Of a DNA stretch of 60,562 nucleotides, positions 3,197-60,524 are shown in pieces. Under the pieces are notes generated by a model. That model made no database searches. It saw only the letters and a program-made list of their open reading frames with translations, and was not told the origin of the DNA. Origin of the DNA: Octopus bimaculoides (Eukaryota); the NCBI RefSeq assembly GCF_001194135.2, contig NC_068981.1, forward strand, positions 21,876,758-21,937,319, written 5' to 3'. Both the position numbers and the translations under genes were made by a program. Each line of letters begins with the position of its first letter. Positions within the stretch are counted from its first letter, which is position 1.

Positions 3197-4085
3197 TCAT
3201 CATCATCATCATCATCGTTTAACGTCCGCTTTCCATGCTAGCATGGGTTGGACGATTTGACTGAGGACTGGTGAAACTGGATGGCAACACCAGGCTCCAA
3301 TCTAATTTGGCAGAGTTTCTACAGCTGGATGCCCTTCCTAACGCCAACCACTCAGAGAATGTAGTGGGTGCTTTTACGTGTCACCCGCACGATGGCCAGT
3401 CAGGTGGTACTGGCAACGGCCACGCTCAAAATGGTGTCTTTTATGTGCCACCTGCACAAGAGCCAGTCCAGGGGNNNNNNNNNNNNNNNNNNNNNNNNNN
3501 NNNNNNNNNNNNNNNNNNNNNNNNNNNNNNNNNNNNNNNNNNNNNNNNNNNNNNNNNNNNNNNNNNNNNNNNNNNNNNNNNNNNNNNNNNNNNNNNNNNN
3601 NNNNNNNNNNNNNNNNNNNNNNNNNNNNNNNNNNNNNNNNNNNNNNNNNNNNNNNNNNNNNNNNNNNNNNNNNNNNNNNNNNNNNNNNNNNNNNNNNNNN
3701 NNNNNNNNNNNNNNNNNNNNNNNNNNNNNNNNNNTTTCACGCAGCTATCCTCATCCATTCTCACCACATGTCCATACCAGCGCAATCGTCTCTCTTGCAC
3801 ACCACAACTGATGCTTCTTATGTTCAGCTTTTCTCTCAAGATACTTACACTCTGACGGGTATGCACACTGACATTACACATCCAGCAGAGCATACTGGCT
3901 TCATTCCTTGCGAGCTTACGCATGTCCTCAGCAGTCACAGCCCATGTTTCACTGCCATGTAGCATGGCTGTTCGTACACATGCGTCATACAGTCTGCCTT
4001 TTACTCTGAGTGAGAGTCCCTTTGTCGCCAGCAGAGGTAAGAGCTCTCTAAACTTTGCCCAGGCTATTCTTATTCTAGCAGCTAC
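3197..4085 (-). mobile_element. 5'-truncated RTE-clade LINE (RT C-terminus plus 3' UTR, (GAT)n tail), spans a gap
   Basis: AARIRIAWAKFRELLPLL...LHGSETW...RRLRWYGHVVRM; (AAT)n on both flanks. Confidence 0.85.
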
Positions 4086-4249
4086 AAATAATAATAATAA
4101 TTCTTTCTACTATAGGCACAAGACCTAAAATTTTGAGGGGAGGGGGTTAGTCAATTACAATGAACCCAGTGCATGACTGGTACTTAATTTATCAACCCTA
4201 AAAAAATGAAAGGCAAAGTTGACCTTGGTAGAATTATCATTATTATCAT

Positions 4250-10058: not shown

Positions 10059-10457
10059 CTGGAATAAACAAACAAATTAATCATAATTTCATCTCTTTGT
10101 AGTATGGCAGTGTCAAGTAAACTTAACCTCCTATGGCTGAAAAGGAGTTTTTCTCATATGATGTAATTTGTGAAAAATAAATCTACTTGTAATTGATTTC
10201 AAATTTTGGCACAAGGCCAGCAAGTTGGGGGAGGGGGTAAGTTGATTACAGTGACCCCAGTACTCAATTAGTACTTATTCTATTGACCCTGAAAGGATGA
10301 AAAGCAAAGTCAACCTAGGTGTGAATTGAACTTAGAACATAAACTCAGATGAAATGCTGCTAATGATTTTGCCTAGTGTACCAATGATTCAGTCAGCTCA
10401 CTGCCTTGAATCTACTAATAATTAAGAATAATAATGCCTAGTTATAGGAGGTTAATA

Positions 10458-17193: not shown

Positions 17194-18706
17194 TATATAC
17201 ATGCATATCTGTTTTCCGCACAGAAAAAGTAACCGTTTGTTACCAGAAATTAAACTGCTGTCATAATTACAATCCAGTGCTAATTAGGTCACCTAGATAA
17301 CAAAATTACCTCTTACTTTCCAGCAAGTCAGCAAGTAGTTTATGAACTTTCATTCACCTCTCCCTCTTTCCTGCCAACTACTTCTGCATATCTAATTAGT
17401 GCATACAAAATCCTTGTTGTTAGTCTGTTAAAAAGTCCACTGAATTTTTTTGTGTATCCTTTTCTTATTACACATTAACTTACAACTAACTCTATTCTGA
17501 GCTACACAACTTCCACATAGATTCAGACAGCTGTGTGGATAAGAAGCTTTCTTCACAATTCTTGGTTTTAAATTCACTCCTATGTGCAGCAATTTAAGCA
17601 AATATCTTTTACTATGTGTCACTCAAAGATTTCTGAATGAAATTTGGACAGAAAATGTGTGAAAGCCTGTGCCAGAAGGAATGTTCCAGTTCTTGTAGGG
17701 TTGATTTAATCCTTTGACATTTAAACTGACCATATCTGGCCCAAATATTCCACCTGTTTTATGCTCAAGCCAGCTAGATCTGGCCCCTCACATCATCACC
17801 AACATTTAATGTCTATTGTCCATGTTGGCATGGGTCTATCCTACAATATCATTCTAAAGATATATAATCATATCATCAAAATTTCAAAGCTATGAGATAT
17901 TCAAAACAATGTGAATAAATAAACTGTACATGTGGCAGAGTAATCTGAATACTAAAGGGTTAAAACCATTAACTGGCCCTTTGGTACCTTTAGTGTTGTA
18001 AGCATTTGGACCAGTCACCAGTTTAAGGATAATTTTGTCTTACCAGTCTCAGAGGCTGCCCTTCTCCCCATGGCTGCTGCCAACACCACCACCACTTCTA
18101 TCATCATTAAGCAATGTTTGTATTCCATGCTGGCATAGGTTGAATGGTTTAGCAGTATTCAATAAATCAGAGGACTGCATTATTTTTTGATCATCATTTA
18201 GTGTCAGCTTTCTATGCTGGCATGGGTTGGACAGCTTGACTGAAAGTGGTAAGCTGGAGAGGTGCACAAGGTTCCAAACTGATTTGGCATGGTTTCTATG
18301 GCTGGATGCCCCTTCCTGATGCCAACCACTCCAAGATCCAAGAGTATAATGAGTGCTTTTTATGTGCCACCAGTACAGGTGCCAGTTACATGACACCAGC
18401 ATTGGCCACAACTAGGATTCCACTTGCTTTGATGAGTCTTCTCAAGCATGGCATATCACCAATGGGTCTTGGTCACTTATCATTTTCGTGAGACCCAATG
18501 TCTGCCATAATTAAAAAAAAAAGGAAAAAAATGTCAATAATGAGGGTTTGTGTTTTCTTTTTCTACCTAGCATTTTGCTTTTTGACATGTTGACGTTTTT
18601 TTATTTTTATTAATTTTAGTTTTGGAATTCCTTTTAGTGGTTCTTTGATGTATTCAACTATCAATCAATACAAATACCAATAATGAATGATTAAAAAAAA
18701 CCTTAC

Positions 18707-18891
18707 CGTTTCCAGTTCTAAAAAATTTCTTCCAAATTTGGTTAACTCTGTATTGTTGAAACGTTTTGTCTCGTATCTTGTTTATGTCAGAAACCATATC
18801 AAGGAACTGTAGTGGTTCAACAGATCTATTTTTCAAGAGAAACCTGCGAAAATCTTCTTTATATAGTTTGCTAAACACCTCCCTAAAGTAC
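18707..18891 (-). CDS. RGSL1: RGSL1-like exon, first RGS-like domain (YFREVFSKLYKEDFRRFLLKNRSVEPLQFLDMVSDINKIRDKTFQQYRVNQIWKKFFRTGN)
   Basis: ttactttcag| acceptor, G|GTAAGG donor, 185 nt open frame, phase 2 to 1. FRxFL...PLQFL pattern recalled from the RGS domain of RGSL1. Confidence 0.88.
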
Positions 18892-18950
18892 CTGAAAGTA
18901 ACAATAGCCAGATGTTAGCACTGTTATTCTTATCCATCACAATGGCAATA

Positions 18951-19523
18951 TCAAGGTTAGCTAAAAAGTTCACAGGTTAACTATGAAGGAGTTATACTAG
19001 AGGTGGGAAATTTTGCATGCATAAATTTCAACCCTTTAACTATATTATTTCTTTCCAGGTAAACTGACATCTGACCGCTCATAGAAAACTTCAAAAGTAA
19101 CTGGTAGCATCTTCTTTTGAAAAGTGACAAAATTTGGAGTTTTGGTATTATCAAGTACCTCCAGAAAAAGGGTTTAACCTCCAAGAACATTCATGTTGAC
19201 ATGGTCGCTACATTAGGGGATGATGCTTCAGCTTTATCAACAGTGCAAAAGTGGGCAGCTGAATTTAGGAGGGGAAAGGAGGGTCTTGAAGATGACCCAT
19301 GGTCTGGATGTCCTGCAACTGCCATCAATGAGGAATATATTAGTCATGTCCACCACATGGTGATGGATGGCAGGTGATTGATTATAAATCAATTAGCTAA
19401 TGCTATTAGCATATGCTGTGAAAGAGTTGAGAAAATTCTGCACAACGAACTTGGCATGATGAAGATTTCTGTTCAGCAGTGAGAGTATCTTGGTCAGCCT
19501 ATGAACTTTTCAGCCAACCCTAG
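18951..19523 (+). mobile_element. Internally deleted mariner, same family as 57299-58555
   Basis: TIRs (caaggttagctaaaaagttca / tgaacttttcagccaaccctag), TA flanks, N-terminal transposase relic TVQKWAAEFRRG..LEDDPWSG.P. Confidence 0.8.
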
Positions 19524-20182: not shown

Positions 20183-20580
20183 GCAGGAGTGGCTGTGTGG
20201 TAAGTAGCTTGCTTACCAACCACATGGTTCTGGGTTCAGTCCCACTGCGTGGCACCTTGGGCAAGTGTCTTCTACTATAGCCTTGGGCCGACCAAAGCCT
20301 TGTGAGTGGATTTGGTAGACGGAAACTGAAAGAAGCCCATCGTATATATGTGTATGTATATATATATGTGTGTTTGTGTGTCTGTGTTTGTCCCCCCACC
20401 ATCGCTTGACAACCGATGGTGGTGTGTTTACATCCCTGTAACTTAGTGGTTCAGCAAAAGAGACCGATAGAATAAGTACTAGGCTTTCAAAGAATAAGTC
20501 CTGGAGTCAATTTGCTTGACTAAAGGCGGTGCTCCAGCATGGCTGCAGTCAAATGACTGAAACAAGTAAAAGAGTAAAGA
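20183..20580 (+). mobile_element. tRNA-derived CORE-like SINE, near full length (other copies about 11085-11230, 14670-14822(-), 34770-34925(-), 36588-36730, 39360-39790, 45615-45760, 51755-52143, 54235-54400)
   Basis: A box tggctgtgtggt, B box ggttcagtccc, ccttgggcaagt core, internal (TG)n, aaacaagtaaaaga tail. Confidence 0.8.
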
Positions 20581-33300: not shown

Positions 33301-33962
33301 CATATATTTTACATTGGAAATAACTTTTAAAGAATGTCAGTGAAAAGTGTTGGAGAGATCTAATCAGATTTAACTGAGGCTGTCCCTTGTTCCCTATTAC
33401 AAATTTTCTCATTTAGTGTAACCTAAATTAAAGCCTATCAAAATTTCATGTTAATTTATGTTCCAAACAATGGCTTAAGTTATTTTACTAAACTCTTCAT
33501 TAGTTTAAGAATTAATTAAAACACAGGCAGAACTTTTCAACAGCAATATGGTAACAAAAGGGTTAAATAGGGAGTATTGAGTTAACTAGAATGAGATAAT
33601 TTTGTGAAAGAGTTCTGTTGGCTCTCTTTCATTCATTATGTCTTGTCCAGGCAGAGTTTTGTTTGTCTAAAAAACTAAATGTTGCTACGTAATTATAAAA
33701 ACATTTTTTTTACTTGTTCCAGTCATTGAACTGTGACTGTGCAGAGGCAATGCTATGAAAGGTTTAGTTGAATAAATTGACTCATCTACTTACTTTTAAA
33801 AATCTGGTATTTATTCTGTTAGTATCTTTTACCGAAGTGCAAATTTGTGGAAATGTAAACAAACCCACACTGGTTGTCAAGTGGTGGAGGGGGACAAACA
33901 CAATTACACACACCTATGTATATATATGTGTGTGTGTATATATGTGTATGTGTGTGTGTGTG

Positions 33963-39551: not shown

Positions 39552-41794
39552 AATGATGATGATGATGATGTATGTGTGTATTTCTTTTTGTCTGTGTTTG
39601 TCTCCACAACCTGTGCTGGTTTGCTTACATTCTTGTAACTTAGCAGTTTGGTAAAAGACACTGATAGAATAAGTATCAGGCTTAGAAATAAATAAATAAA
39701 TAAATACTCTGGTCGATTCATTTGACTACAAATCTTTCAAAGCAGTGCTACAACATGGCTGCAATCTAATGACTGAAACAAGTAAAAGATGTATGTATGT
39801 ATGTGTATATGTATGTATAATATAATGTTGATATTTTGTGATATCTGTACCATAAGTAGTATTACAATCATTCAGCAAGCAATAAATACTTGGTATGATG
39901 GTCCATCCACACTCACAATTTATTTTTGACCACTCGAAGGTTTCATGAATTCTAAATTCATATGGAATTAAGACTCAAAACCACCTAAATTAATGTGGTA
40001 CCAACCAACAGATCAAGGAGTCAACAGGTGTTGTTCTGACACTGGTTTTGAGTAGAATCTACCAGAAGAAACTAATTAATCTATCTGGTTGCAATTTGGT
40101 TACATGGGAAATAGATATTACTGATCTAAGAAACACATATATTGAAAAGGTGTTAATAAATATTTGCTGAAATTAGATGAAATCCTTATGAGCAAAACTT
40201 GCAAGTGACTGGTGTTTTAGCCATGAAGAGTGAAGGATCTAAAAAACTTAATACCTTGAAAACTATGATAAATGACAGAAATTTTCATTTGCTTTGGATG
40301 ATAGAAAACAAAAACAAAAAAATTAGTTACAAAATTTATAAAAAGTTAATTGAAATGTATTTGCATACATTGTGTATATATATATATATATNNNNNNNNN
40401 NNNNNNNNNNNNNNNNNNNNNNNNNNNNNNNNNNNNNNNNNNNNNNNNNNNNNNNNNNNNTGTATGTATGTATGTATGTATGTATGTGTGTATGTATATG
40501 TATGTATGTATGTATATAGTTTAACAATGTTGGGCCTCACGGAGGCAAAGCGGCTGAGTTCTTTTCAAGTGTTGGGCCACATGGAGGCAATGACCAAGAC
40601 TTTTGACATTATGTCGTGCTTGAGAAGACCCATCAAGCTGAGCAAAATTGCAGTTGTGACAGATACCAGTGTCATGCCGGTAGTATGTAAAAGCGCCCAT
40701 TACACTCTCGGAGTGGTTGGTGTTAGGAAGGTCATCCAATTATAAAAAACCATGCCAAAGTCTGGAGTCTGGTGCAGCCTTCCAGCTTACCAGCCCTGGT
40801 CAAACCATCCAACCCATGCCCTGGTCAAACCATCCAAGCATGGACAATGGACGTTAAATGATGATGATGATGATAATCATGATTTCGTTATAAATTTGTT
40901 TTAAAATCTCTTCACTCTTCAATTGCTTCCAGTCACTTGAAAGTTTCATCCTGTAGAAATGGCAACATATGTGAAGCCATTATAGTTTAAACGTTACAAA
41001 TAAATAAAATAAATAAATATATAAATGGTGAGTTTACATGCAAAATAATGTTAAGAGAAAAACTTGTTTTATTTAGTAACTTTAGATACTTTAATAATTT
41101 CAATAACTGTCTTAACAGGTTGATTCTTATAAAAATTTTAAACCACTCATCATTTTTGCTGATCTACTTCTTACACACCAGCAATAAGTAATTTTGACTC
41201 AGATGTTAAGTAATTAACCCAATTTAAATAAAATTAATTATAAGAAAATATAATTTTGTATTTAGTTTCATTACTGTGTAGGCACACACTCACATACATG
41301 TATGCACATCATTGTTAACCTTTTAAACTCTATTTTTCTAAATGGCCATGACTGACCAGAGACAGACTGCAGTGGAAGGAGTCCAGGGAGTGATGAAGCC
41401 CTGAATATTGGATTGGGTTGGGTTGGATAGGTCTCATATTATCTTTTATCTCAATCTCATAATTTCATCAATGAGTCGCTATCTTTTGACATCAAATCTT
41501 CCCATTTTCCCCACTTCCACTGTCAGCATATGGTACTCTTTATACTTAGCACTAGTCATCTATTTACATCAAATATTGGTTTCACATTTTGGCACATGGC
41601 CAGCAGTTTTGGGGGAAGGGCTAAGTTGATTATATCAATCCTAGTGCTCAACTGGTATTTATTTTGTTGACCCAAAAGGATGAAAGGCAAAGCTGACTTT
41701 AGTGGAATTTGAACTCAGAACCTAAAGACAAAGTATTTTGCCTAGTGTACTAACGATTCTGCTAGCTTGTTGCCTTATTTACATCAAATATTAA

Positions 41795-44654: not shown

Positions 44655-44722
44655 TCAAACATAGGATATCAGTCCAGATTTGTTTAAACTGTAGACAGAA
44701 CTCCTTCTTAGTGTTGCCTTCA
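44655..44722 (-). CDS. UPF0658-like membrane protein terminal exon (V-KATLRRSSVYSLNKSGLISYV*)
   Basis: Strong pyrimidine tract ending tttgtttcag|, phase 1, ends at TGA. Confidence 0.72.
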
Positions 44723-45461
44723 CTGAAACAAAGGAAAAATAAGAACAAAATTGCGTTACTATCAACATGTATTCTCTGGGCAGCTGATGTTTCAGTATCA
44801 GAAGAGTCAAGTCATAATCTACCAGCTCTCTCTGAGACATGTCAGTCCTCCAGCTATAGTTATTGAGCCATGTCATACATACACATATATATATATCATC
44901 ATCATCTTCATCATCATCATTTAGTGTCTGCTAGGTGGTTTGACTGGAACTGGTAAGCCAGAGAGCTGCATCAAGTTCCAGTTTGATTTGACATGGTTTT
45001 TCTATGGCTGGATGACCTCGATGCCAACCACTCCAAGAGTGTAATGGGCGCTTTTTATCTGCAACCAGCATGGGAGATTTTATGTGCCACCAGCATGGGT
45101 ATCAGTTACATGACACTGACATTGGCCACAACTACAATTTCACTTGGCTTGACAGGTCTTCTCAAGCACAGCATATCACTAAATGTCTTGGTCATCTGTC
45201 ATTGCCTCCATGAGGCCCAACATTTGAAGATCGTATTATATATATACTTTTCTACTCTAGGCATAAGGCTCGAAATTTTGGGGGAGGGGGCCAGTCGATT
45301 TGATCAACCCCAGTATGCAACTGGTACTTAATTTATCGACCCTGAAAGGATGAAAGGCAAAATTGACCTCGGCAGAATTTGAACTCAGAACGTAAAGACA
45401 TGAAATAGCGCTAAGCATTATTCCCAGCGTGCTAATACTTCTGCCAGCTCACCACTTTTCG

Positions 45462-45506
<45 letters not shown>

Positions 45507-46374
45507 AGTAGTTAGTTATGTAGGGACAAATCACCTTCCTTTATAGTTTCATTGATCATAATTGCAAACCTAAAGTCTCCACTATAAGCAACATGACTTA
45601 TAATAGATAAAGGCATGACTGTGCAGTTAAGAAGTTAGCATCATAATTACATAGTTTTGGGTTAAATCCCATAGCATGACACCTTGTGTGAGTGTCTTCT
45701 GCCATAGCCTTGGGCTGACTGATGCTTTGTGAGTGGAATTTGATATATAGAAACTATATAGGAAGGACCATTCCTGTTCTCAGTTTAACACTACTAAATA
45801 GCCCGTAGGTACCTTAACAGAGTCCACTGGCTTACTGTGTTGCAAGCATTCAGGTTAAGTTTCCAGTCTGAAAATAACTTTCTTTCTTCTTCCTTTCTTA
45901 CTAGTCTCAGAAGCCCTGAAAAGTCTTGGATTCTGCCCTTCCTACTCTGATAGAACTATCAAAAAATACAATAGTGTTCAAAAAACCATTCAAGAAACCT
46001 CTACAGTTTTAAGAGGTGAGACCAACTCTTTTTAATAATGTTTAACAAAGCACATTGCAACTGAAGTGATAACTCAAGAAGAGTTGTCACATAATACATG
46101 ACAATATGAAAACAAACATGAATTTAATGATGATGATGATGGTGAAGTGGAAGAAGAGTAAAATAAAGAACAAGCTGAAAAGAGGCTTCTGCTAATGTCA
46201 CTGATCCTAATATTGATGATGATAACCACCATCAGCATCATCAGAAGGCTTGGATGTCATTGTCATCTGAAGGTTATGTCAACAACCATTCAAATAATAT
46301 CATATGAATGATGTTCAGGATTAGAGAGAATGAAAATAAGAATAAATGAGTAGAGAACTGTTGCTTGTGTGTGT

Positions 46375-46428
<54 letters not shown>

Positions 46429-46812
46429 GAAGAGAGAAAGAAAGAGAGGAAGACAATGAATTACAGATAATGATGGGAAAAAGAGCCAGTGTTGTATGTT
46501 GTGAAGGGAGAAATGGGATGAGATGGGTGGCCATTGGTGTTAAGAAAGGATGAAAGTGACTGGGTGAGATGAGGAATGAAAACGAATGTATAAGGAAATA
46601 GAAGAAAAGGAAGACTGAGAAGGACTTAGCTGAAGATGTGGAGGAGGAAATGAGGACAAGGCAGTTGATAAAGACGGGTGGGCAAAATGGAAAAGACAAC
46701 TGACATGAGACCCACATGGCTAATCCTTGCTTTTGCAGAGGAAATGGTCTTGAAACACTTGTTACAGGTGTTAGAGATCAGGTGATGATCAATGACGATA
46801 TTTTGAGACTAA

Positions 46813-46852
<40 letters not shown>

Positions 46853-46967
46853 TTGATTAATAAATTCAAAATAAGATAAAAATCTTTTACAAGAATTTTA
46901 TCAGGAAGCTAGTGTGTAAAAAAATTCATAAGGGAAATTTCTATTCCCAAGAATATAATTATTCGTT

Positions 46968-47185
46968 TATATTTATATAAGGGCATTACTACAGAATAAT
47001 GCCACACAACAGACTTCCCAAATCAACACATTTTAGTACTGAATGCGAGGAAAGCAACCCTCAAAAGAAACCAACATTAAAAAAAAAAACTTGGGTTGCT
47101 TTCCTCGCATTCGGTACTAAAATGTGTTTATTTGGGAAGTCTGTTGTGTGGCATTATTCTGTAGTAATGCCCTTATATAAATATA
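46968..47185. repeat. Foldback MITE (about 93-bp arms, 32-nt loop)
   Basis: gggcattactacagaataatgccacacaacagacttccc... and its reverse complement, near-perfect. Confidence 0.9.
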
Positions 47186-47531
47186 TATATATATTATAGC
47201 TATAAACTAACGTAAGCATGAAAGAGATCAACTCTTTGCTGATGAAGGATCACCAGACTATAGTATTAAATGTTTCTCCTCACAAAATACAAACAAAAAA
47301 AGTAACACTAAACACAACTTTCAGAAAGCGAAGACTATTTAAGTTACAGGTAAAAAAAAAAAAAGCAGTAAACAACCAATTTTTTTTTTACCTGAGAGTT
47401 GCAGAACAATAATTAAAGTAGACACTAAATACTGTTTTTAGTTTGGTTAAAAAACAAATACATTAAATAAAATTTTTGTTACAATAATTATCAAATTAAA
47501 GATTTACTAATAAATGAAGAGAGTGACCTAC

Positions 47532-47618
47532 CTCTTTCTTTAAGGCCTTTGTTAAAGTTGCGTTGTACGAAAAATAGCTCAATCATTAATAAAGCCCAAA
47601 CGAACAATGCTATGGTAA
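47532..47618 (-). CDS. UPF0658-like membrane protein exon (V-TIALFVWALLMIELFFVQRNFNKGLKER)
   Basis: ccattttcag| acceptor, GAG|GTAGGT donor, phase 1 to 1. TM helix followed by the RNFNKGLK motif. Confidence 0.88.
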
Positions 47619-47705
47619 CTGAAAATGGATAACATTTCTTTTATCAAAGATGACAATCACATGATAATGCTCAAAGTAAATATAATATATTCCATAGTTT
47701 TTTAA

Positions 47706-47907
47706 ATAATAATAATAGTATTTTAAAAGCTTAAAGCTTATAAGTAATCACCATGCAGTGACTAAAGAAAATAATCTAATAATGGGGCAAATAAGCCCTT
47801 GATGGGCAAAAGTAGGTTATCTTGCATGCCCCATTATTAAACTATTTTCTTTAGTTATTGCATGATGATTGCTTATAAGCTTTAAGCTTGTAAAATATTA
47901 TTATTAT
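47706..47907. repeat. Older imperfect foldback MITE (about 80-bp arms)
   Basis: aaagcttaaagcttataag...atggggca / tgccccatt...cttataagctttaagctt. Confidence 0.75.
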
Positions 47908-48932
47908 TATTCACAGGATTGTAAAAATCGAGGCTGCTGAACAAAAACCATTACAGAAAATATTCTATAGTAGTTTATGACTGAATATTTGATTAAAAGT
48001 AACAAAGATTGATGATTAAACTGATTCGTTCCTATGATATCTATGTCAAATTATTGATGGCTTTTTAATTAGAATTATAACAGTTTAATGTATTAGTAAA
48101 CTAATTAAGAAGAGAATGAAGAAATTTCAAACTCTCTTGATTGAAAATACAATGATATTATGACCATTCGATTTAAACTTTCATAACTTTATTGACCTCT
48201 GCTTAGAATCATAGATGTACCTATGGGCTTTATACTGCAAAAAAATTCTTCTGATCTTCTTAACTAGGAACCAAGCACTGCCATCTGGCTTTCATAAAAA
48301 TGTTATTTCAGTCATTAATATTAGTGATTCCTAACTGGGGCTTCACAAAATCCTCTTTAAGGGTTTTGTAATAAGTATCAATAAGCAAAAATTGTAGTTC
48401 CCATACAAACCTAAAAATTCTGCCAATCCATCATAACAACAACAAAAATCCTTTCTACTATAGGCACACTTTAATAATAATAATAACGGTTTAAGTTATG
48501 ACACAAAGTCAGCAGATTAGTCGGAGAGCTAAGTCAATTAAATCAACGTCTTTGTTCAACTGGTACACGTTTTATCGACCCCTGAAAGAATGAAAGGCAA
48601 AGTTGGCCTCAGCTGAATTTTGAACTAGTATGATAGTTTATAGAATTCCAAGGGAGAAGAGGCAAAGTTTGAATATAGAATGTAAAAGGCTGTGATCGAA
48701 TACTACAAGACCTTTTGTCCAACTAGCTGACAATTCTGCCATTCCATTATATTCATAATAATTTTTAATTTAGGCCCAACGCTAGAAATTTTTGAATGAA
48801 GCAGTTTAGTTGATACCATAAACTGCTTATTGACCCTGAATACTGCAAGGCCTTTCTGTGCTACTCTCTTATGATTCTGCCAATCCACCAATCTTGCACA
48901 AATAATAATAATAATAATGATAATAATAATAA

Positions 48933-49490
48933 TAAATGCCCGGATGCAGTACCAGGCAGTGGCTCTCATGGCTTCTGGTCTTAATTGATTGGAAGTGTTA
49001 TCATGTACATTGTTTGTCTTGGTATAAAAGATGGACTACAGCAAATATTCTGTTTAATACCACAGATTTGCTTGTCAGTTGTTTGACCATAACTAGTTGA
49101 GCATGTCCCTTGGTGGCTGACGATATGTGCATCTCTGATCACGAGCAGAAGTAGTGGGGGAGCATCATAGCCATGTGTTGAGAGGAATTCTTTGGGGTTT
49201 GAATAATTCATCTCTGGAAATATGGGTGTTTTGTTCAACATCCTTAAACAAACCTTATTCAGGGACCTTTTGAGCGGGATGGGCTACTTCACCAGAAGAG
49301 AATTCTAACTGGGTACCACCTGCAAGGTCATGAGCTGTTTATCTTGATATGAGATCACTATGTTGTGCACATATGGTTGTGATGCATGTGTCTGGTGTAC
49401 CCTTATCAGACAGGTAGCCATGATGGGTATACCGGGCTATGTATATTTGTGCCCCAGTGTTACTTTGATGGCATGCACAGCTCTCTCACT
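48933..49490 (+). mobile_element. Non-coding retroposon-like element embedded in (AAT)n (copy 2, longer)
   Basis: Same family as 2368-3182; (AAT)n flanks on both sides. Confidence 0.7.
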
Positions 49491-49491
49491 A

Positions 49492-49545
<54 letters not shown>

Positions 49546-50060
49546 CATGCCTCCTCATTGATATTCATGCCTCCTCATTGATAATCATGCCTCCTCATTG
49601 ATATGACTGTCCCAATTGATATAAACGTATCTGTCAAGACCTACCAAAAACTGAGCAAATATAAAGATCTTGAAATAGAAATTAGCAAAATGTGGAATCT
49701 GAAGACGAAAACAATACCTATTGTCATAGGTGCCCTGGGAATGACAGCGAAACAGGCTGATTACTACCTAGCTCAGATACCAGGAAACCCCAAAATGGCT
49801 GAAGTTCAAAAGATAGTGCTCATGGGAACTGCCCATATCCTACGTAAAATACTGTCTATGTGATCTCAAATTTTAAAGCAAACACATAATTTTCTTATGG
49901 TTTCTTAAACATTCTCTAGAACAACACTATGTACAAATCCAAATATATGGTACCCTAGGCATAACACCTACATGAACTTCTAACTTGTTGTCTCTTGAGG
50001 TCTCTGGGTGAGACTTGGATCCAACTTGTACAAATGCAAAACAAAAGTCAAACATAAAAT
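49546..50060 (+). mobile_element. 5'-truncated R4/Dong-type RLE retrotransposon in (AAT)n
   Basis: CLLIDMTVP...KYKDLEIEISKMW...IPIVIGALG...QKIVLMGTAHILRK* (restriction-like endonuclease end) plus 3' UTR; (AAT)n on both sides. Confidence 0.85.
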
Positions 50061-50418
50061 AATAATAATAATAATAATGATGATGATAATAATATCCTTT
50101 CTATTATAGGAACATGACCTGAATTTTGGCAGGAGGAGGACAGTTGATTACATTGATCTTAGTGTGTAACTGGTATTTATTTTATCAACCCTCAAATGGA
50201 TGAGATACAAAGTTGACCTTAGCAGAATTTGAACTCTGAATGTAAATATGGACGAAATACCACCAAGCATTTTGTCTGGCATGATAATAATTCTCCCAGC
50301 TCAACATCTTAGCAATAATCAAAATAATAATAATAATCCTTTCTACTATAGGCACAAGGCCTGAAATTTTGAGGGAAGGGGCTAGCTGATCACATCAATT
50401 CCAGTGCTCAACTGCAGA

Positions 50419-50508
50419 ATGATCCCTGGCTTACCATCCCTGCAAGAAGTGCAAAAGATTGTTTTAACTGGTATGTCACATGTATTGAGAAGAGCAGTGT
50501 CAATGTGA
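50419..50508 (+). mobile_element. Short R4/Dong-type 3' fragment
   Basis: IPGLPSLQEVQKIVLTGMSHVLRRAVSM*. Confidence 0.65.
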
Positions 50509-50749
50509 GAACAATTGCTACCCATATATTTTAATTTTTTATTTTATCTTATTTTTTATTTATTATTAATTAAAAAAATTTTTTTTTTCACATAACTTCA
50601 TTTCATTTTGAAAATGAACAATCTAGTGTGTTTACTTTAATGACTTATCAATGTATTTAGTGAATTTCTTTGCCCTAGGAGTCAGGAAGACACTCAGCAT
50701 AAGATGGAAACAAAACTAAAAGAAGAAAAACTAATAATAATAATAATCA

Positions 50750-51130
50750 ACCATGCTCTATGATATGCCAATACATATGACTAGATACTGTTGTCAAGGA
50801 CCACCAAGAAAAGAAAATATCTGCTAATCTAGAAGATGACATTGTATCTCTAAAAGAAATGGAGAAACTGTGGAAATACATATATTAGGAATAGAGATAA
50901 CATGACTGTGGAGCAAGAAAGCAAAAATAATCTCTTTAATAATAGGTGCTTTGGGCATGATCAAAAAACATACAGACAAATATGTAGCCCAAAATCCAGG
51001 ACTTATATGTAACATGCAGAAAATAGCACTGCTTGGCACTGCTCACATCTTACATAAAGCATTTTTGGTACAGTAAAAATAACACCACCAAAACAAATCA
51101 CAGTACATATCCAAGATACACAGAGCTCTA
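50750..51130 (+). mobile_element. Older R4/Dong-type 3' fragment
   Basis: IIGALGMIKKHTDKY...MQKIALLGTAHILHK; preceded by (TAA)n. Confidence 0.75.
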
Positions 51131-52703
51131 CTCAGTAGTGCAGTGAAAGCTCACAATAAAAATAAGACTACTGAATAATAATTCTTTCAAATTTTGGCAC
51201 TGAGCCAACAGTGTTTAGGAGAAGGGGGTAAATCTATTACACCAACCACAGGGATCATTGGTACTTATTTTATCGAACCATGACAGAATTTGAACTCAGA
51301 ATGTAGAAACGGAAGAAATGCCACTTAGTATTTTATCCAACACATGATTCTACCAGCTTGCTGCCTTAGACTACTGAAATCATATTTTCTAATATAAGCA
51401 TCAAAGTATATATTTTTGACTGGGAAAAAACAGTGAATTAAATCACTATTTAGTACTGTTTAGATTGTGACAGTCTGAGTCATTTTAAAACTCATTTCTA
51501 TTGGTTTGGTTTGGAGAAAGAGGCTCTTAGCCTTTGCAAGTCATCTAAGACCTTTATTTTATCAACTCCAGAAGAACAGAAAGAGGCCTTTGAACTTAGA
51601 ACTTTGAATTCAGAATGTAAAGATATCTAATGATCTATAAGGCATTTTGACCAGTATTTTATCAATTCTGTCACTTGACCAAATGATACTATCAACCCCG
51701 ACAGATAATAATGTATCTCTAAAAAAAGAAAGGGAAAATTATCTAAAAGAACGCAGACATGGCTGTGTGGTAAAAAGTTTGTTTCCTATCCATATGGTTC
51801 TGGGTTCAGTCCCACTGCATGGCACATTGGGCAAGTAGTGTCTTCTATTATAGCCTTGTAAGTAGATTTTGTAGATGGAAAATAAAAGAAGCCCATTACA
51901 TGTGTGTGTGTGTGTGTGTGTCTTTCTCTTTGACTCTGGGTTTGTGTCACCCACGGTTGCCATTTGACAACTGGTGCTGGTGTGTTTACATGCCCATAAT
52001 TTAGCAGTTCAGCAAAAGAGACTGATAAAATAAATACCAGGCTTTAAAAAATAGGTACTGGGGTCAATTTATTCAACAAAAAGTTCTTTGATGTGGTACC
52101 CTAGCATAACTCCAGTCTAATGAGGGAAATGAGTAAAAGATAAATGATAATATTCTGCCAGTCCATCATCCTATTGCTCCTGTATTTTATTGACCTCAGA
52201 AAGATAAACAGCTAAGTTATTGCTGGTGTGAAGGGAGATGATGGGTATGGTTTTAAGTTTGTTTGTTGTAAAATTTCTAAGGGGATGATTGAAAGGATGA
52301 GTAACTATAAAACTGTGCCTGGTAAATAGCAGGAAAACACGACTGTGAAATAATTTGCCTATGTGATAGAGCTGTGTTAATTCTTATGTTAATGTACAGC
52401 ATAACATAATAGACACTGCTATTTAACAAGTAATATTGGTTTCAAATTTTGGAACAAGGCCAGCAATTTCGGGGTAGGGAGTACATTGACCCTAGTGCTC
52501 AACTGGTACTTATCTTATCAATCCCCAATAGGATGAAAGGCAAAGTTGACCTCGGTGGATTTTGAACTCAGAATGTAAAGGCAGATGAAACACCACAAAG
52601 CATTTTGCCCGATTCTGCCAGCTCGCTGCTTTAACAAGTGTAATATTATAATATAAATGAGATATCAGTGTTATATCAGAGGGATATATCTATGTTTATA
52701 TAC

Positions 52704-52785
52704 CTGAAGTCAGTATACAGTAAATCATAAACTTTTCAGTAAGGTCATTGCTGTTGGATGGTAAGTTTGATAAATGGATGTAAAG
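52704..52785 (-). CDS. UPF0658-like membrane protein exon (LYIHLSNLPSNSNDLTEKFMIYCILTS)
   Basis: Long pyrimidine tract ending ttttcag|, CAG|GTATAT donor, phase 0 to 1. Confidence 0.8.
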
Positions 52786-53119
52786 CTGAAAAAGAAGAAA
52801 ATAAAAATAAACAAAACAAACAAAACCAAAACAAAACAAAAGAAGGAACATTAAGAATTTTTAAAAAAAGCACAAAACTGGTTCTAAATCTTGTTAAACT
52901 TCTTCCAGCCATCTCAAATATCCACCTGAATATTTTCAAAAGATATACTAATTGTTCATGACATAAGGGATAATAGCATTCATGAGTTCTATCCTAGCTT
53001 TTGCATTTCTGCCTGCTTGACATTTGATAACTAAGAAAACTAAACTATTCAAAACAAAATTATAAATTCTTCAGAAAATATGAAAACAAAAATCTGAAAA
53101 TGTTTTCCTTCTATAATAA

Positions 53120-53830
53120 TGGTTTCAAACATTGATGCACGGTCAGAAATTTCTCAGAGAGAAAACAGTCAATTGTGTTGGTAGCCCCAGAACTTGAATG
53201 GTACATCATTTTACTGCACCCAGCAGGATTTGAACTCAGCAGTACATCACCAAACAGTCACTATAACCTTCTTTTTGAAGAGATCAGGTTTAAGGAAGGT
53301 TTTCAGTGCTTCATTTTGGTCCAGTCACTGCGAAGAACATTTTTTATTATTGTACAGAATCCACTTTTCATCGCAAGTTACAATACAGTCAGGAAATGGA
53401 TCAGTCTGGTTATAGAGAAGAAGCAACGAGCAAATTTCATATCTGCACATTTTCTGATTTTCATTCAAATCATGTGGTAACCATTTGTTGAGCGCTTTTT
53501 TGATTTTCCGATTGCATACAAACTTGAAGTTCTTTTGCCAGTTCTTGAGTGATTTTACATAGATCTTTCTCAATTATGGTCTTTAATTGACTGTCATTGA
53601 TGACAGATGGGCATCCACTATGCTCACGATCTTCAAGGCTCAGGTCTCCACTGTGAAATCATTTAAACCATTTTCGAGCTGACCACTCACTGGTCATTTC
53701 CTGACCAAATGTTTCGTTGATATCATGAGCAGTTTCAGCTGCTTTACATCTTTATTTAAGTTCAATAGCAAAATTGCTTGAATACCGTTCTTTGATAGTT
53801 CCATTTCAGATGATTGTAACAATGGTGAAA
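53120..53830 (-). mobile_element. Decayed mariner transposase (second family)
   Basis: KWLPHDLNENQK...IVTCDEKWILYNN (WVPHEL and D-catalytic motifs). Confidence 0.8.
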
Positions 53831-56335
53831 AATGTATCAATGTTAATTTATTGATGAATTTGGGCAGTCTATGTCTGTGTTAGCAGACAATTGCAAAAAA
53901 AAAAATATTAAAAAAATTCAAAACTCTGCAAAAATCTGGTACAAATTCTTCATAGTCCAAAATGTTGCTTACTTTTTACTCAACTTGATAGTTCAATCTA
54001 GAGTGATATCTGTTACAGTTTTAACTAATTTGTCATATTGTTGTCAAACCGTCATCACACACACAAAAGAAAGAAGAAAGAAAAAAAATTAAATAAATAA
54101 AATGAACTAAAGATTGAAAATCTAAAAAAATAAATATAAAACTAATCAACAAAACAATAACTAAGGAAAATCACTAAAATGAAATGAATGAATTTATAAG
54201 CAATTAAGAATATATCACATGCAACAAGTGGATGTAGGTATAGTTGCGAAGTGAAGAAGTTTGCATTGCGACCACATGGTTGATCCTATAGCATGCCACC
54301 TGGAGCAAGAGCCTTCAGCTATAACCTCAGGTTCTTCAATGTTTTGTGTGAGAAATTTAGCAAATAGAAACTGTGAGAATGCCCATCATACATGTGTGTT
54401 TCTGTGTATATGTGCAATCATATATGTGTGTGTATGAGTATATGAATGTGTATGTGTGTGTGCATGTATCATCATCATCATTCCAATGTCCTCTTTCCAT
54501 GCTGACATGCATTGGACAGATTGTGACAATCTGAGTCATTTCTTATTGAGAGCTACTGTTCATATAGACTGGTATTTGTATGTCATTTGACCTGATTTCT
54601 ACCATTAGGTGCCCTTCTGATCACCAATCATTTTACAGAGTATACCGGATGCATTTTCTCATGGCACCACCTTGAGAGAGTTTGCATTCCTGGTGTGAGG
54701 AAGGGCATCCAGCCATTGAAACCACGCTAAAGTAAACACTGGAGCTCAATGCAGTTCTCTAGCTCATCAGATCCTGAAGAACTACTCCAACCATGCCAGC
54801 ATTGAAGATGGATGGCAAAAAGTGATAATGATGGCAGGACAAGAGGGACCTCGTCTTCCTATCTACCCTTCTGTCCTGGCCTCTACTTCACTGCTTCTGT
54901 CCCTTCCTCCTTGTTCCATTTCCTCCCTCCACCATCCTCTCTGCTCTCGTGTGACCTGTGGTCAGCTTTCTTTTCACTCCAGCCGCTGTGAAGGCAAGAC
55001 GAACTACTAGCGTTCTACCTCAGATTTGCGTTTGGCCGTACGGCTTTTGAATGTTGTTTTCACTGTCCATTTTTTCCTGTCTTGGTTTGTGTTTGCCACC
55101 TTGGAATCCTCTGTGTAGTTGGTTGATCCACTACTCNNNNNNNNNNNNNNNNNNNNNNNNNNNNNNNNNNNNNNNNNNNNNNNNNNNNNNNNNNNNNNNN
55201 NNNNNNNNNNNNNNNNNNNNNNNNNNNNNNNNNNNNNNNNNNNNNNNNNNNNNNNNNNNNNNNNNNNNNNNNNNNNNNNNNNNNNNNNNNNNNNNNNNNN
55301 NNNNNNNNNNNNNNNNNNNNNNNNNNNNNNNNNNNNNNNNNNNNNNNNNNNNNNNNNNNNNNNNNNNNNNNNNNNNNNNNNNNNNNNNNNNNNNNNNNNN
55401 NNNNNNNNNNNNNNNNNNNNNNNNNNNNNNNNNNNNNNNNNNNNNNNNNNNNNNTATATATATAAATAGATAGATAGATAGATATAATACAGGATAGAGG
55501 GGTCTCTTTAATCTTGTCAAAGACAATGTCAAAAGCTGGTGGCATATCAAAACACCATCAGTTCATGCTGTAGAGTGATTATTGATAGAAAGTGTATCTG
55601 GTTGTAAAAGCCATGCCAAACGCAATGCAACACAACACACATATTTTAGGTGAAACCACACTGTAATATTGTTTCTACATCTGAGACAGATCTACTGTTA
55701 CCCACCTTCCACACACACACACAGCATAGACATCATCTGCAAAACAGCTCCAAATTGTGTGTGTGTGTGTCTGTGTGTGTGTGCATGTGTGCGCGTGTGC
55801 ATGCATGTGTGTGTATGTGTGTGCATATGTGTGTGTCTGTGTTTGTCTCCAACCACCACTTGACAATTAGTGTTGGTGAGTTTATGTCCCATAACTTAGC
55901 TGTTCGGCAGAAGAGACCAATACAATAAGCACTAGATTCAAAAAAATAAATACCAGGGTTGATTCATACAACTAAAAACATTCTTCAAGTTGGTGCCCCT
56001 GTCTAATGACTGAAACAAGTAAAAGATAAAAGATATATTGGCAGTTTTCTCTGTTTTGTGTTTGCCAGATAAGGAAGAGAACCAGAGAAGTGGAACACAC
56101 TAAGAAGCAGCCAACCTGTGTGAGCATGTAAAAAAAAAAAAAAACAAGTGTGATGATGATGATGATGGTGGTGGTGGTAGTGGTGGTGGTAGTGGTGGTG
56201 ATAGTGGGGTGGAAAGGAGAAAAGAGATGATGATGATGATGATGATAATGCCATGACAACTTCATGAGCACCAGACTGCTCCAGACAGACTTCATTTCAA
56301 AGCAGGCCTCAATATAAAAAAAGGGATTCACTTAC

Positions 56336-56422
56336 AGTTATTGTTTTAAATAAGTAATATCCAGGCTTTAAGAATCCAACTAGAATGAATACCAAAACAC
56401 CAATCTTGCTTTCCTTCTTCAT
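56336..56422 (-). CDS. UPF0658-like membrane protein exon (MKKESKIGVLVFILVGFLKPGYYLFKTIT)
   Basis: ttattctacag| acceptor, ACT|GTAAGT donor, phase 0 to 0. ESxIG and YxLFK motifs. Confidence 0.88.
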
Positions 56423-56636
56423 CTGTAGAATAAATGAAAAGTGTGTGTATAGTCAATAGTAAGTAGTAAGTTGTCCTATATAGTCAGATGTATGTAGTCC
56501 TATGTGATCAGTTGTATAAACTTAGAAGGTCATATAAGACTGAAGCCTACCCATTTTGGTTATACCCCCCAAAAGTTCAGGCTTAACACCTATCCCACTA
56601 CCACAACATACTTATTTAATATTAATCAATTTGAAA

Positions 56637-56878
56637 GGCGGTGAGCTGGCAGAAACGTTAGCACGCCGGGCGAAATGCTTAGCAGTATTTCATCTGCCGC
56701 TATGTTCTGAGTTTTGAGTTCAAATTTCACCAAGGTCGACTTTGCCTTTCATCCTTTCGGGGCCAATTAAATAAGTACCAGTTATGCACTGGGGTCGATA
56801 TAATCGACTTAATCCGTTTGTCTGTCCTTGTTTGTCCCCTCTGTGTGTAGCCCCTTGTGGGCAGTAAAGAAATAAGAA
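56637..56878 (+). mobile_element. tRNA-derived SINE with Nin/Deu-type central domain (minus-strand copies about 2090-2262, 4100-4235, 10200-10410, 41580-41775, 45255-45452, 48500-48630, 50100-50290, 52440-52632)
   Basis: ggcggtgagctggcagaa head, gagttcaaatt B box, gcctttcatcctttcgggg...ataagtaccag domain. Confidence 0.75.
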
Positions 56879-56884
56879 ACATTG

Positions 56885-57225
56885 ATTGTAAGGGCATTGT
56901 TTTTCATCACAGCAATGCCAGAGCACACACTTTTTAGCATATGAAGCAAAAGTTACTGGGGCTTTGCTGGAAAGTTTTTCTACACCCTCCATATTCGTCC
57001 AGCCTTCTGCCTTCAGATTTTCACTTGCTTCGGTCTTCTCAAAATTCATTGAATGGAGAGACCTTACACTCTGAAAAGGATGCAAAAATTCACCTGGAAG
57101 AGTTTTGCATCAGTAAAGATAGGAAATTCTTTGATCAGGGTATAATGGATCTACCCAGAAGATGGCAGAAGATGCTGGAATGAAATGGTAATTATATCAT
57201 TGATTGAATAAATTGCTTTGTGTTT
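56885..57225 (+). mobile_element. Mariner transposase 3' fragment
   Basis: LHPPYS..L.PSDFHL.RS.QN...FFDQGI.DLP.RWQK. Confidence 0.8.
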
Positions 57226-57236
57226 AAAACTTGTAT

Positions 57237-57287
<51 letters not shown>

Positions 57288-57298
57288 ACGTGTGTAAA

Positions 57299-58555
57299 TA
57301 TATGGGCTGGAAAGTTCATAGGCTAACTATGAAGAAGTGACACTAAAGCAGTGAAATCATGCATGCACTAATTTCAGTTCTTCTTATAAATAACTGTATT
57401 GTTTCTTTCCAGGTAAACTGATATTTAATTGTTCAAAGAAAACTTCAAAAGTACCTATTAGTGACTTCTCTTGAAAATCAATAAAATTTGGCATCACAGT
57501 ACCTGCAGAAAAAGGGTATAGCCCCCATGAACATTCATGGTATATTAGGGGATGATGTTCTAGCTTTGTCAATAGTGTTAAAAGTGGGAAGCTGAATTTA
57601 GGAGAAGGGAGTCTTGAAGATGACCCAGGGTCTGGATGTCCTGAAATTGCCACCACCAAAGAAAACATTGATCATGTGCACCGCATGGTCATGGATGACA
57701 GGTGATTGATTATAAATCAAATAATCAATGCTATTAGAATACTCTGTGAGAGAGTTGAAAATGTTTTGTACAATGAAAATTTTTGCTTGGTGGATGCCAC
57801 ATCTTCTGACACCTGATCAAAAACACACCAGGTTGATCACATCACGGGAAAATCTGACATTCTTTGAGATCAATCTAGTTGGTTTCTTTCAATGTTTACT
57901 TAGCCAGAATGAGTGTTGGCTTCATCACTTTGAGCCAGAGACAAAGAGACAATCCATGCAGAGGGAACACCCTTCCTCACCTGCTCCAAAGAAGGCCAAG
58001 GTTGTTTCATCTGTAGGGAAGATGATGGTCTCAGTTTTTTTGAGATGCAAAAAGCATTGTGTTTATTGATCATCTTCAAAAGGGCCACACCATCAATGGA
58101 GAGTACTATGCCAAATTGCTGAGATAGTTACAAAAGGTTATTAAGACCAAATGGCCAGGAGAGCTGATGAAAGACCTTGTTTCATCAGGACAATGCTCCA
58201 GCACACAAGTCCTTGGTTGCAATAGCTGCTGTGCATGACTGTAGCTTTGAACTGGTTGATCACCCACCCTATTCTCCTGATTTGGTCCCATTTCACTATC
58301 ATCTGTTCCTCAACATCAAAAAAACACTTGGCTGGGAACCAGTATTGTAGTGATGATGACATTATATCTGCTGTTGATGGACATATTTTGACCACCAGGT
58401 TAAAAGCTTCTTCACCAATGGGACCCAAGCACTGCAATAACTGATGGAAAACGTGTGTAGACTGCAAGAGGGACTATGTTGAAAATAAACCTCATTTGGT
58501 CATGTTTTATTGGAGTATCTTGACCAGCCTCTGAACTTTTCAGCTGACTCTCATG
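57299..58555 (+). mobile_element. Near-full-length decayed mariner (about 1.26 kb)
   Basis: TIRs at both ends; WMPHLLTPDQK, ECWLHHFEPETKRQSMQ, HQDNA-like and HPPYSPDL motifs with stops and frameshifts. Confidence 0.88.
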
Positions 58556-58913
58556 AGACATCAAAGTCACATTGATATGCAATAGACAGCTGATGAGAGA
58601 TGATCCCTCATTGTACTAAATATATTTTTGGCTCCACATTATAATAATCCTGTTGAAGACATTTTACTTACCTAGAATATTACATGTTCTTAGAGTACTT
58701 TAGTCCTTGTTATAGGTGTTAGAAGTGATTTCTTACATAGGAGTAATATTAATTTTTAACAAAGTTGAAATGCTGTTATAGGGCTGATATGAAATATATT
58801 CTCTACTATTTATCTTGCTAAATATGAAGAATTCATACATTCCATTGGAAATGCAATGATTATTTACAAACTTCAAAATTTGTCTAAATTGAATGAAAAG
58901 TTAAAGAACTTAC

Positions 58914-59048
58914 CAACACGTAGCCAAGAAAATCCCATCCTAAGGATATTGGAATGCCAATAAACAGAACAACAAGCTCCATAGTGTTTGGCTTAAGGTT
59001 GGCAAGGTTATTAAACCGCAGACTAAGAGTAAGAATCACAACGCTGAC
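58914..59048 (-). CDS. UPF0658-like membrane protein exon (VSVVILTLSLRFNNLANLKPNTMELVVLFIGIPISLGWDFLGYVL)
   Basis: atattttctag| acceptor, TTG|GTAAGT donor, 135 nt. Only frame 0 is open. Confidence 0.85.
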
Positions 59049-59599
59049 CTAGAAAATATATTTCAAATTTTCATTTTTAAAAACTGACTTTTATAAATGA
59101 AGGAATAATAATGAACTGCTTAGTTATCCAATATGGTATAGAGAATCAATCTACTGCAGATATTTCACATTGTAATTCATGTATGGAAATAAGTGTGTGT
59201 AATTAAACATATGCTATTATCATTACTAGAATACCTGGGCCATCAGTAATGATGGTGGGTGTTTAACTAAACTTTGTGATAGTTACAACATTTTGGTTTG
59301 TATGTATGAATATTTGATTTTTACCAATTGTAGGTATTGTTGAAAAATGTACACGATGAAAGTTGCTAATGCGAGTATCAGAATTTAAATTTAAAAAAGC
59401 CAAAATAAGGAAATTATATTTATCACTCCCAAAATATTATACAGGTCTGATTACTTTTGGTATGTACAATTCACTCAGTATTCATTCTACATTATGTTAA
59501 TTTCTACAATAAATACTCTACCTAATTTTGCAAGTGTTGTACATATATATGAATTAAAAACTTCCAAAATATATGCATATATACACATGGATACATGAT

Positions 59600-59780
59600 G
59601 TTACAAACAGGTTACATACATTTTCTAAAAGTTTTCAAGGAACAGCAGTTTATGCAAAAGCTACACATTTACAACATATTTGACACATTCCAAAGCATTA
59701 TTATTCACATTCACTGTGAAAGTTCCTGAAGAACATTTCTTTTATAGACATGAGGAGGCACCAACACACCTTGACCTGAA
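59600..59780 (-). mobile_element. Possible Gypsy integrase Zn-finger relic
   Basis: VLVPPH...VLQEL followed by CxxC-like residues; heavily decayed. Confidence 0.3.
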
Positions 59781-60253
59781 TTTTTAATCTGTAATTTCAA
59801 ATTATTTCTGAGTTCTGCTATACTTAAAGGAAGGCATACAAATATGCAGTGTAATAAGTAAATAGGCTAAAGTTCAATACACAATATCTTCTCAGTAAGT
59901 TGAATATAAAATTTGATATGTGTATTTTATTGTTGTGTAGTGGCAAATTGTTTGCATGCTATATTCAGTTTGATGTATAGTCAGTTTGTTTTGTTACTTC
60001 TTGTGTTAGTTAACATTTAATTTGTAGTGAAATTTTCAGTAGTATTCAGTGTTAAATGTACAGATAGCTTATATGATCAGTTGTCTTTTGTTACAACTGC
60101 TCTACTATATCTTTGGCCAATGAACCTTATATTATTTGACTGGTAGAGAATTGCATTATAGGTAAATGTGTACAATATATATCATGTGAGTTGTGATATA
60201 GTATTTTAGGAGAGTGGGTTATATATCTTTAGATATACACCTAACTTTCCTAC

Positions 60254-60333
60254 ATTAAATTGGAAGAGAACTGAACGCAGAAACTCCAAACTGATCAACA
60301 ACAACAAATATTTATTGTTCGGTGGAAAATAGC
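60254..60333 (-). CDS. UPF0658-like membrane protein exon (YFPPNNKYLLLLISLEFLRSVLFQFN)
   Basis: tctacatttcag| acceptor, AAT|GTAGGA donor. Phase 0 joins VSVVIL to give a continuous hydrophobic helix. Confidence 0.55.
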
Positions 60334-60398
60334 CTGAAATGTAGATGTACGGTTCTTCGAGCTGGTGTCGTTATAGAGACAACTTGGTTCAACCACAC

Positions 60399-60498
60399 TC
60401 AAATGGGAAAGCTTGCTTAGACGTCTTGCTTGGTCGCTGTCTGGCTTGGTAAGAGTCAGTCTAATAGCGGGAACGCTTTGATGTTGAAACCCACGCAT
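60399..60498 (-). CDS. UPF0658-like membrane protein, putative first coding exon (MRGFQHQSVPAIRLTLTKPDSDQARRLSKLSHL)
   Basis: ATG at 60498. A weak A|GTGTGG donor and a 65-nt intron would join the 60333 exon in phase 1. Speculative. Confidence 0.3.
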
Positions 60499-60502
60499 GC
60501 TT

Positions 60503-60524
60503 TTTTGGCGCCAATATGACGTCA
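60503..60524. promoter_or_regulatory. Promoter-like motif cluster: E2F-like TTTTGGCGCC, CCAAT and palindromic CRE TGACGTCA
   Basis: Three overlapping or adjacent motifs in a CpG-retaining stretch next to the putative ATG at 60498. Confidence 0.4.

Follow-up and report, generated by a model that had tools for sequence, protein, structure and literature searches.

On the minus strand of a 60,562-nucleotide (nt) stretch of Octopus bimaculoides DNA (NCBI RefSeq assembly GCF_001194135.2, contig NC_068981.1, positions 21,876,758 to 21,937,319; this whole stretch is called the window below, its first letter being position 1), we identified a chain of seven exons which is likely to represent a true nuclear gene of the host animal, coding for a four-pass DUF7789 membrane protein of 180 to 212 residues. 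The chain runs from position 60498 to position 44655 and spans 15.8 kb. Exon boundaries were read directly from the sequence; all internal boundaries are of the AG...GT type, the phases of exons 1 to 7 (0/1/0/0/0/1/1) are compatible, and the six GT-AG introns range in length from 65 to 5085 nt. The spliced open reading frame (ORF) of 639 nt codes for 212 amino acids and is closed by TGA. An earlier reading of the same DNA (the original prediction) had described a spliced gene of phase-compatible exons for a four-transmembrane protein of 212 amino acids, and all of this was recovered, as seven exons separated by ordinary GT-AG introns were found on the minus strand, the rebuilt ORF has exactly that length and includes all the peptides quoted at the time, and the hydropathy profile displays four helices. 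The gene, which is likely real, is a newly found member of an already known, uncharacterised family.

Comparison of the spliced protein with Pfam revealed DUF7789 (PF25044) as the only significant match, with 40.1–40.6 bits (E 3–4e-10) as compared to the curated gathering cut-off of 25 bits for this family, in agreement with the earlier assignment of the protein to an uncharacterised family. The match forms a single colinear stretch that covers positions 18/19 to 126 of the 129 positions of the profile and extends across exons 2 to 6. All gene models that contained exon 5 scored between 36.5 and 40.6 bits (E 5e-9 to 3e-10), and exons 3 and 4 alone still gave 31.6 bits (E 1.9e-7). The reversed sequence gave no match, and neither did any of seven composition-preserving shuffles (three global, four within exons) at E ≤ 10, whereas three permuted exon orders yielded 16.9–26.4 bits with the match split in two. 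Replacement of eight non-hydrophobic motif residues by alanine lowered the score by 14.7 bits, and in single alanine probes the losses amounted to 6.4 bits for E49A, 4.8 for W38A, 4.7 for Y67A and 3.4 for P65A. The residues to which the profile gives weight are thus a tryptophan in helix 2, the glutamate of the basic loop KKESK and a P-x-Y motif after helix 3; conversely, Asp39, also in helix 2, runs counter to the profile, and its removal raised the score by 3.2 bits. Overall, these probes point to diffuse conservation within the family, and a sequence pattern loose enough for distant members would be expected to match tens of thousands of random sites. This dependence on exon order, on sequence and on individual residues indicates that a specific pattern is matched and not merely a set of greasy helices.

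The octopus protein is nevertheless a distant member of DUF7789, with a match worth roughly 0.3 bit for each position; profile positions 1–17 have no counterpart in it, loop 3 carries a few extra residues, and the basic tail with the motif NFNKGLK lies outside the domain. Like tetraspanins, SCAMP proteins and the DHHC membrane core, it has four helices with short ends in the cytosol, and the second of its outer loops is the larger one. However, scores reached at most 14.7 bits for Tetraspanin (PF00335; cut-off 32.1), 15.4 for SCAMP (cut-off 27) and at most 12.7 for DHHC (cut-off 28.7). The protein also lacks the cysteine-rich large loop, there being no cysteine motif in loop 3, as well as the DHHC motif, and membership in these three families is ruled out.

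The individual exons contribute unequally to this picture. Exon 4 is the most family-like part and scores 18.5 bits by itself. Exon 3 cannot be extended upstream, because its acceptor contains an in-frame tag stop codon. To join exon 4, whose end is in phase 0, to exon 6, whose start is in phase 1, an intermediate exon of 3n+1 nucleotides is needed, and the 82 nt of exon 5 fit this requirement. Inclusion of exon 5, which lies in unique DNA and has the best acceptor of the whole gene, raised the Pfam score from 31.6 to 36.5–38 bits and carried the match to profile positions 126–128; an alternative form of 67 nt would be possible through the donor T/gtatac. The peptides KTIT/LY and KGLKER/V correspond to the junctions between exons 4 and 5 and between exons 6 and 7, respectively (the slash marks the splice point). 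Exon 7 follows the only strong downstream phase-1 acceptor that gives a short terminal ORF and then a polyadenylation signal. When the model was compared with the window by tblastn, only the seven exons were matched and no second copy of the gene was found.

The weakest part of the model is its 5' end, comprising exons 1 and 2. Exon 2, located outside repeats, adds only 3.5 bits to the Pfam score, and with it the match begins at profile position 19 instead of 30. Exon 1 is the least certain exon, as it lies outside the Pfam coverage and is without a strong donor; in an alternative version it would be reduced to 4 nt (60498–60495) with the donor gtgggt, which leads to a protein of 180 amino acids beginning with MRYFPP. 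Upstream of the first ATG, a perfect palindrome was noticed that is a possible core-promoter element, and the window edge is only 38 nt further upstream.

Two other choices were considered and rejected. Translation from Met23, within exon 3 (MELVV...), was not adopted as the main model, since the 22 + 27 residues upstream bring about 11 bits and helix 1. Two candidates for the middle exon begin with LY, namely 55971–55896 and 52785–52704, of which the second was kept. The first (LYESTLVFIFLNLVLIVLVSSAEQL) is phase-compatible and helix-like, but adds only 0.5 bit, has a gttatg donor and is located inside a dispersed repeat.

Intron 4 (56335–52786) contains an assembly gap that, as far as can be told, has no effect on the coding sequence. 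The junction of exons 4 and 5 is in phase 0 on both sides, and the reading frame is thus independent of the length of the gap. In addition, the Pfam alignment is unbroken over the junction of exons 4 and 5, and exons 4, 5 and 6 together place 64 residues on 59 profile positions, so that there are extra residues at this junction and no piece of the domain is missing. The join of the scaffold is itself supported by the fact that exons of one domain flank the gap on both sides in the right order and orientation.

Coordinates of the gene model, its flanking signals, the gap in intron 4 and the repeats of the window (positions of the window; splice points are marked by a slash)
Feature	Position	Strand	Description
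Palindrome TGACGTCA, CRE-like	60517–60524	-	Perfect; 19 nt upstream of first ATG; followed by GGCGCC
Exon 1	60399–60498	-	100 nt; ATG, then MRGFQHQSVPAIRLTLTKPDSDQARRLSKLSHL; ends in phase 1; weak donor TGA/gtgtgg
Exon 2	60254–60333	-	80 nt; (S)YFPPNNKYLLLLISLEFLRSVLFQFN; first half of helix 1; acceptor catttcag/; donor AAT/gtagga
Exon 3	58914–59048	-	135 nt; VSVVILTLSLRFNNLANLKPNTMELVVLFIGIPISLGWDFLGYVL; end of helix 1, loop 1, helix 2; acceptor ttttctag/; donor TTG/gtaagt
Exon 4	56336–56422	-	87 nt; MKKESKIGVLVFILVGFLKPGYYLFKTIT; basic loop 2, helix 3; acceptor ttctacag/; donor ACT/gtaagt
Exon 5	52704–52785	-	82 nt; LYIHLSNLPSNSNDLTEKFMIYCILTS; loop 3, start of helix 4; acceptor ttttcttctttttcag/; donor CAG/gtatat
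Exon 6	47532–47618	-	87 nt; (V)TIALFVWALLMIELFFVQRNFNKGLKER; helix 4, start of basic tail; acceptor cattttcag/; strong donor GAG/gtaggt
Exon 7, coding part	44655–44722	-	(V)KATLRRSSVYSLNKSGLISYV, then TGA (44657–44655); pyrimidine tract 18/20 before acceptor
AATAAA	44508–44513	-	About 140 nt past the stop codon; likely poly(A) signal
Assembly gap	55137–55454		318 N; within intron 4; adjoins (TA)n/(GATA)n microsatellite
SINE-like family	45249–45454, 50098–50306, 52419–52611, 56633–56811, 4086–4235, 10192–10407, 41560–41730	both	About 200 bp; 70–85% identity
Second repeat family	51760–52154, 55800–56039, 20190–20578, 33763–33918		Rejected exon 55971–55896 lies inside it
Mariner/Mos1 relic	19108–19374	+	HTH_48 match, E 4e-6; broken by stops
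Mariner/Mos1 relic	57728–58069	+	Intron 3; weak partial Transposase_1 (DDE) match; broken by stops
Mariner-like, by eye only	53328–53751	-	Intron 4; no Pfam match; broken by stops

All seven exons are located in unique DNA, clear of the repeats that occupy the introns. Introns 3 to 6 harbour elements of about 200 bp resembling short interspersed nuclear elements (SINEs), which are 70–88% identical to copies elsewhere in the window, and the introns also hold mariner/Mos1 relics and many microsatellites. Because the introns carry dispersed repeats that recur in the window, the gene is better understood as a resident of the host genome than as a contamination; the same argument had been made in the original prediction from the repeat-filled introns, and the recurrence of these repeats outside the gene supports it. 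Scans of the window for tRNAs and Rfam families gave no match at all, and hence none to the SINE-like repeat. As a separate observation, the best repeat pair within the window consists of 49013–49524, in intron 5, and 2378–3215, near the left window end, which share 352 bp at 88% and 176 bp at 84% identity, suggesting a younger element copy.

According to the hydropathy profile, the four helices occupy residues ~10–40, 50–72, 79–97 and 119–147 of a core of 179 amino acids. The C-terminal tail (QRNFNKGLKERVKATLRRSSVYSLNKSGLISYV) has a charge of about +8 and loop 2 (MKKESK) one of +3; by the positive-inside rule, the N-terminus, the C-terminus and loop 2 are predicted to be cytosolic, and loops 1 and 3 would face the lumen or the outside. 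Acidic residues (Glu/Asp) are present within helices 1, 2 and 4. The protein contains no soluble domain, and no N-glycosylation sequon occurs in the outer loops. Provided that exon 7 is right, the basic, serine-rich tail includes a putative RRSS site of the AGC-kinase type and terminates in -S-Y-V, an ending that would fit both a class-I PDZ ligand and a C-terminal-valine signal for export from the endoplasmic reticulum (ER).

On these grounds, a role can be proposed that is wholly inferential. With its whole membrane core made up of a single DUF7789 domain, the protein would most likely be a small non-catalytic resident of the Golgi or the endomembrane system that helps to organise vesicles, membrane composition or cargo or acts there as an accessory factor. 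Its functional surfaces would be a polar network buried among helices 1, 2 and 4 and a cytosolic tail that would be regulated and might bind a scaffold. Alternatively, so small a protein may serve as a channel or carrier. Placing the protein in the Golgi is conditional on DUF7789 and UPF0658 being one family.

The UPF0658 name goes back to the original prediction, where the gene was placed in the mainly fungal UPF0658 Golgi membrane family, known from S. pombe C1952.10c and C23H3.04 and from many fungal paralogues. The likeness, as described there, would consist of a small, multi-pass and uncharacterised protein with an ..ES.IG.. loop motif and a Y[YF]LFK block; by contrast, the octopus gene has six introns and lies in an animal-type, repeat-rich genome. 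The UPF0658 label derives from that prediction and from the fact that the sole match is a recently created DUF, and we regard the chances that DUF7789 and UPF0658 are one family as evenly balanced. A recent DUF would be expected for a family that formerly carried only a UPF label. When blocks of the fungal consensus given in the prediction were grafted on the real sequence and scored against DUF7789, RRES..IGM and YFLFKL.RMY changed the score by +1.2 and +0.4 bits, EF.LT and II by -4.7 and -4.1 bits, and all blocks together by -8.1 bits, scores that refer to DUF7789 and not to UPF0658 itself. This consensus omits W38 and P65, both of which are weighted by the profile, and conversion of NF.KGLK to alanines did not lower the score (37.2 versus 36.5 bits), this motif being outside the Pfam domain. 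The proposed fungal consensus therefore appears to differ from that of the DUF7789 profile and is at best approximate.

No proteins were found through words of the proposed motifs among 5.8 billion protein clusters at E ≤ 10, none of the searches returned a named UPF0658 protein or any member of DUF7789, and a literature search found no mention of DUF7789, PF25044, PTHR34391, IPR040410 or the S. pombe gene names C1952.10c and C23H3.04. The UPF0658 name and the Golgi label are present in the literature: UPF0658 was listed as one of the 100 fungal gene groups with the most dynamic changes, and in an insertion screen in Thermothelomyces, a UPF0658 mutant was less abundant at the higher of two temperatures (log2 of the 50 °C/37 °C abundance ratio -1.83, adjusted P 0.017).

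A real gene whose domain is not that of UPF0658 is an alternative to which we assign a probability slightly short of even and which overlaps with our reading of the locus as a host gene. In that case DUF7789 would be a separate family that may be widespread among animals, and the link to fungi would be mistaken. The overall loss of 8.1 bits upon grafting, the absence of the profile-weighted W38 and P65 from the proposed consensus and the empty searches seeded with its words all point in this direction, whereas the RRES..IGM and YFLFKL.RMY blocks were neutral to slightly positive and the recent origin of the only matching DUF is what a UPF-only family would show. A stronger proposal in the opposite direction holds that DUF7789 is the fungal UPF0658 family and that very few animals have a member of it, the octopus gene being one such case, unannotated so far. 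It would then either descend from the opisthokont ancestor, with loss in most animals, or have passed from a fungus to an animal long ago and later gained six spliceosomal introns and an animal-type PDZ-ligand tail; this we consider doubtful. Should the family be UPF0658, an animal member would make the role of this Golgi protein accessible in another lineage that is distinct for experiments, and would be a concrete case for weighing patchy retention against transfer. The weight of the finding rises if the family proves to be otherwise restricted to fungi; should DUF7789 already be known from many animals, it amounts to routine annotation.

Whichever family name applies, several observations speak against the locus being a functional gene as modelled. 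For a profile of hydrophobic helices with 129 positions, a score of 40 bits denotes a distant match. Both candidate donors of exon 1 (gtgtgg and gtgggt) are poor, and the true 5' end of the gene may lie beyond the window edge. The rejected middle exon demonstrates that plausible exons arise by chance in the T-rich DNA of this region, and some selection bias remains, the exons having been picked by eye for similarity. Furthermore, word-seeded searching of the 5.8 billion protein clusters with an X-padded query, a 128-aa query and 120 synthetic variants, the latter comprising conservative substitutions and the proposed fungal motifs, returned nothing at E ≤ 10, a threshold that over so many sequences requires about 29 bits and is combined with a word index that limits sensitivity, so that distant relatives may drop out. 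With HMMER, the ORF of exon 4 had a sole match (P0001) among 1.84 billion representatives, which turned out to be a translated tandem-repeat artefact, and no relatives were detected in metagenome, prokaryote-genome or viral contigs or among PDB sequences. If the gene has annotated relatives, it is odd that not even a close orthologue turned up. As there is neither a predicted protein with these exons nor a close orthologue in the searched collection, the gene seems to be unannotated wherever it is present. Annotation pipelines often miss small multi-exon genes for short membrane proteins. If the model is true, a seven-exon gene absent from 5.8 billion searchable clusters is an example of such short, intron-rich membrane genes missed by annotation.

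Could the chain have been assembled from fortuitous open frames in AT- and repeat-rich DNA that were chosen for their hydrophobic look, with the Pfam match as a false positive of a transmembrane profile? Stop-free runs of 45 codons are not rare at 35% GC, the spurious exon at 55971–55896 is likewise phase-compatible and helix-like, exon 4 alone reaches only E = 0.002, and neither a homologue nor a transcript backs the model. Nevertheless, we judge such an origin to be quite improbable in view of the E values obtained for exons 3 and 4 together and for the full chain, the requirement of the match for the native order and sequence and for specific non-hydrophobic residues, the two perfect gtaagt donors located precisely at the ends of the similarity, the avoidance of repeats by all seven exons, and the stop codon followed by AATAAA at the end of the chain. 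The possibility that a decaying or silent copy is at hand, in which the frame is intact and expression or selection has been lost, would explain why no predicted protein is on record; the poor donors of exon 1 and the moderate donor of exon 5 fit with it, as does the lack of any protein with these exons among the clusters searched. Against it, 639 nt at 37% GC are free of stops and frameshifts, five of the six introns have good splice sites, the chain is flanked by a promoter-like and a poly(A) signal, and the missing record may be due to the general tendency of annotation to overlook such genes, so that we consider it unlikely. Very improbable, in our estimate, is a larger gene in which exon 6 skips exon 7 and joins far-downstream exons, for example an RGS-domain exon at 18657–18914 (26 bits, cut-off 23.9) about 26 kb downstream on the same strand, to give a membrane-anchored RGS protein. 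The strong donor of exon 6, whose partner was deduced from sequence only, would allow it, but exon 7 has the best downstream phase-1 acceptor (18 of 20 pyrimidines) and carries a short ORF closed by a stop codon, with AATAAA 140 nt further on, and nothing links DUF7789 with RGS domains. We therefore retain a host gene for a four-pass DUF7789 protein as the preferred explanation of the seven exons.

With respect to the rest of the window, the exon-like frame with the RGS domain (FRRFLLKNRSVEPLQFLDMV...NQIWKKFF) aligns with positions 10–66 of the 117-position profile and probably belongs to a neighbouring gene. An open frame at 3441–3965 on the minus strand, interrupted by an assembly gap, resembles the C-terminal region of a reverse transcriptase from a long interspersed nuclear element (…RRLRWYGHVVRMDEDSCVK) and had no Pfam match at E ≤ 0.01. 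The window has a GC content of about 34% and includes ten assembly gaps (10–605 N), mostly beside microsatellites, and di- and trinucleotide arrays of the (CA)n, (GA)n, (TA)n and (AAT)n types are very frequent in it.

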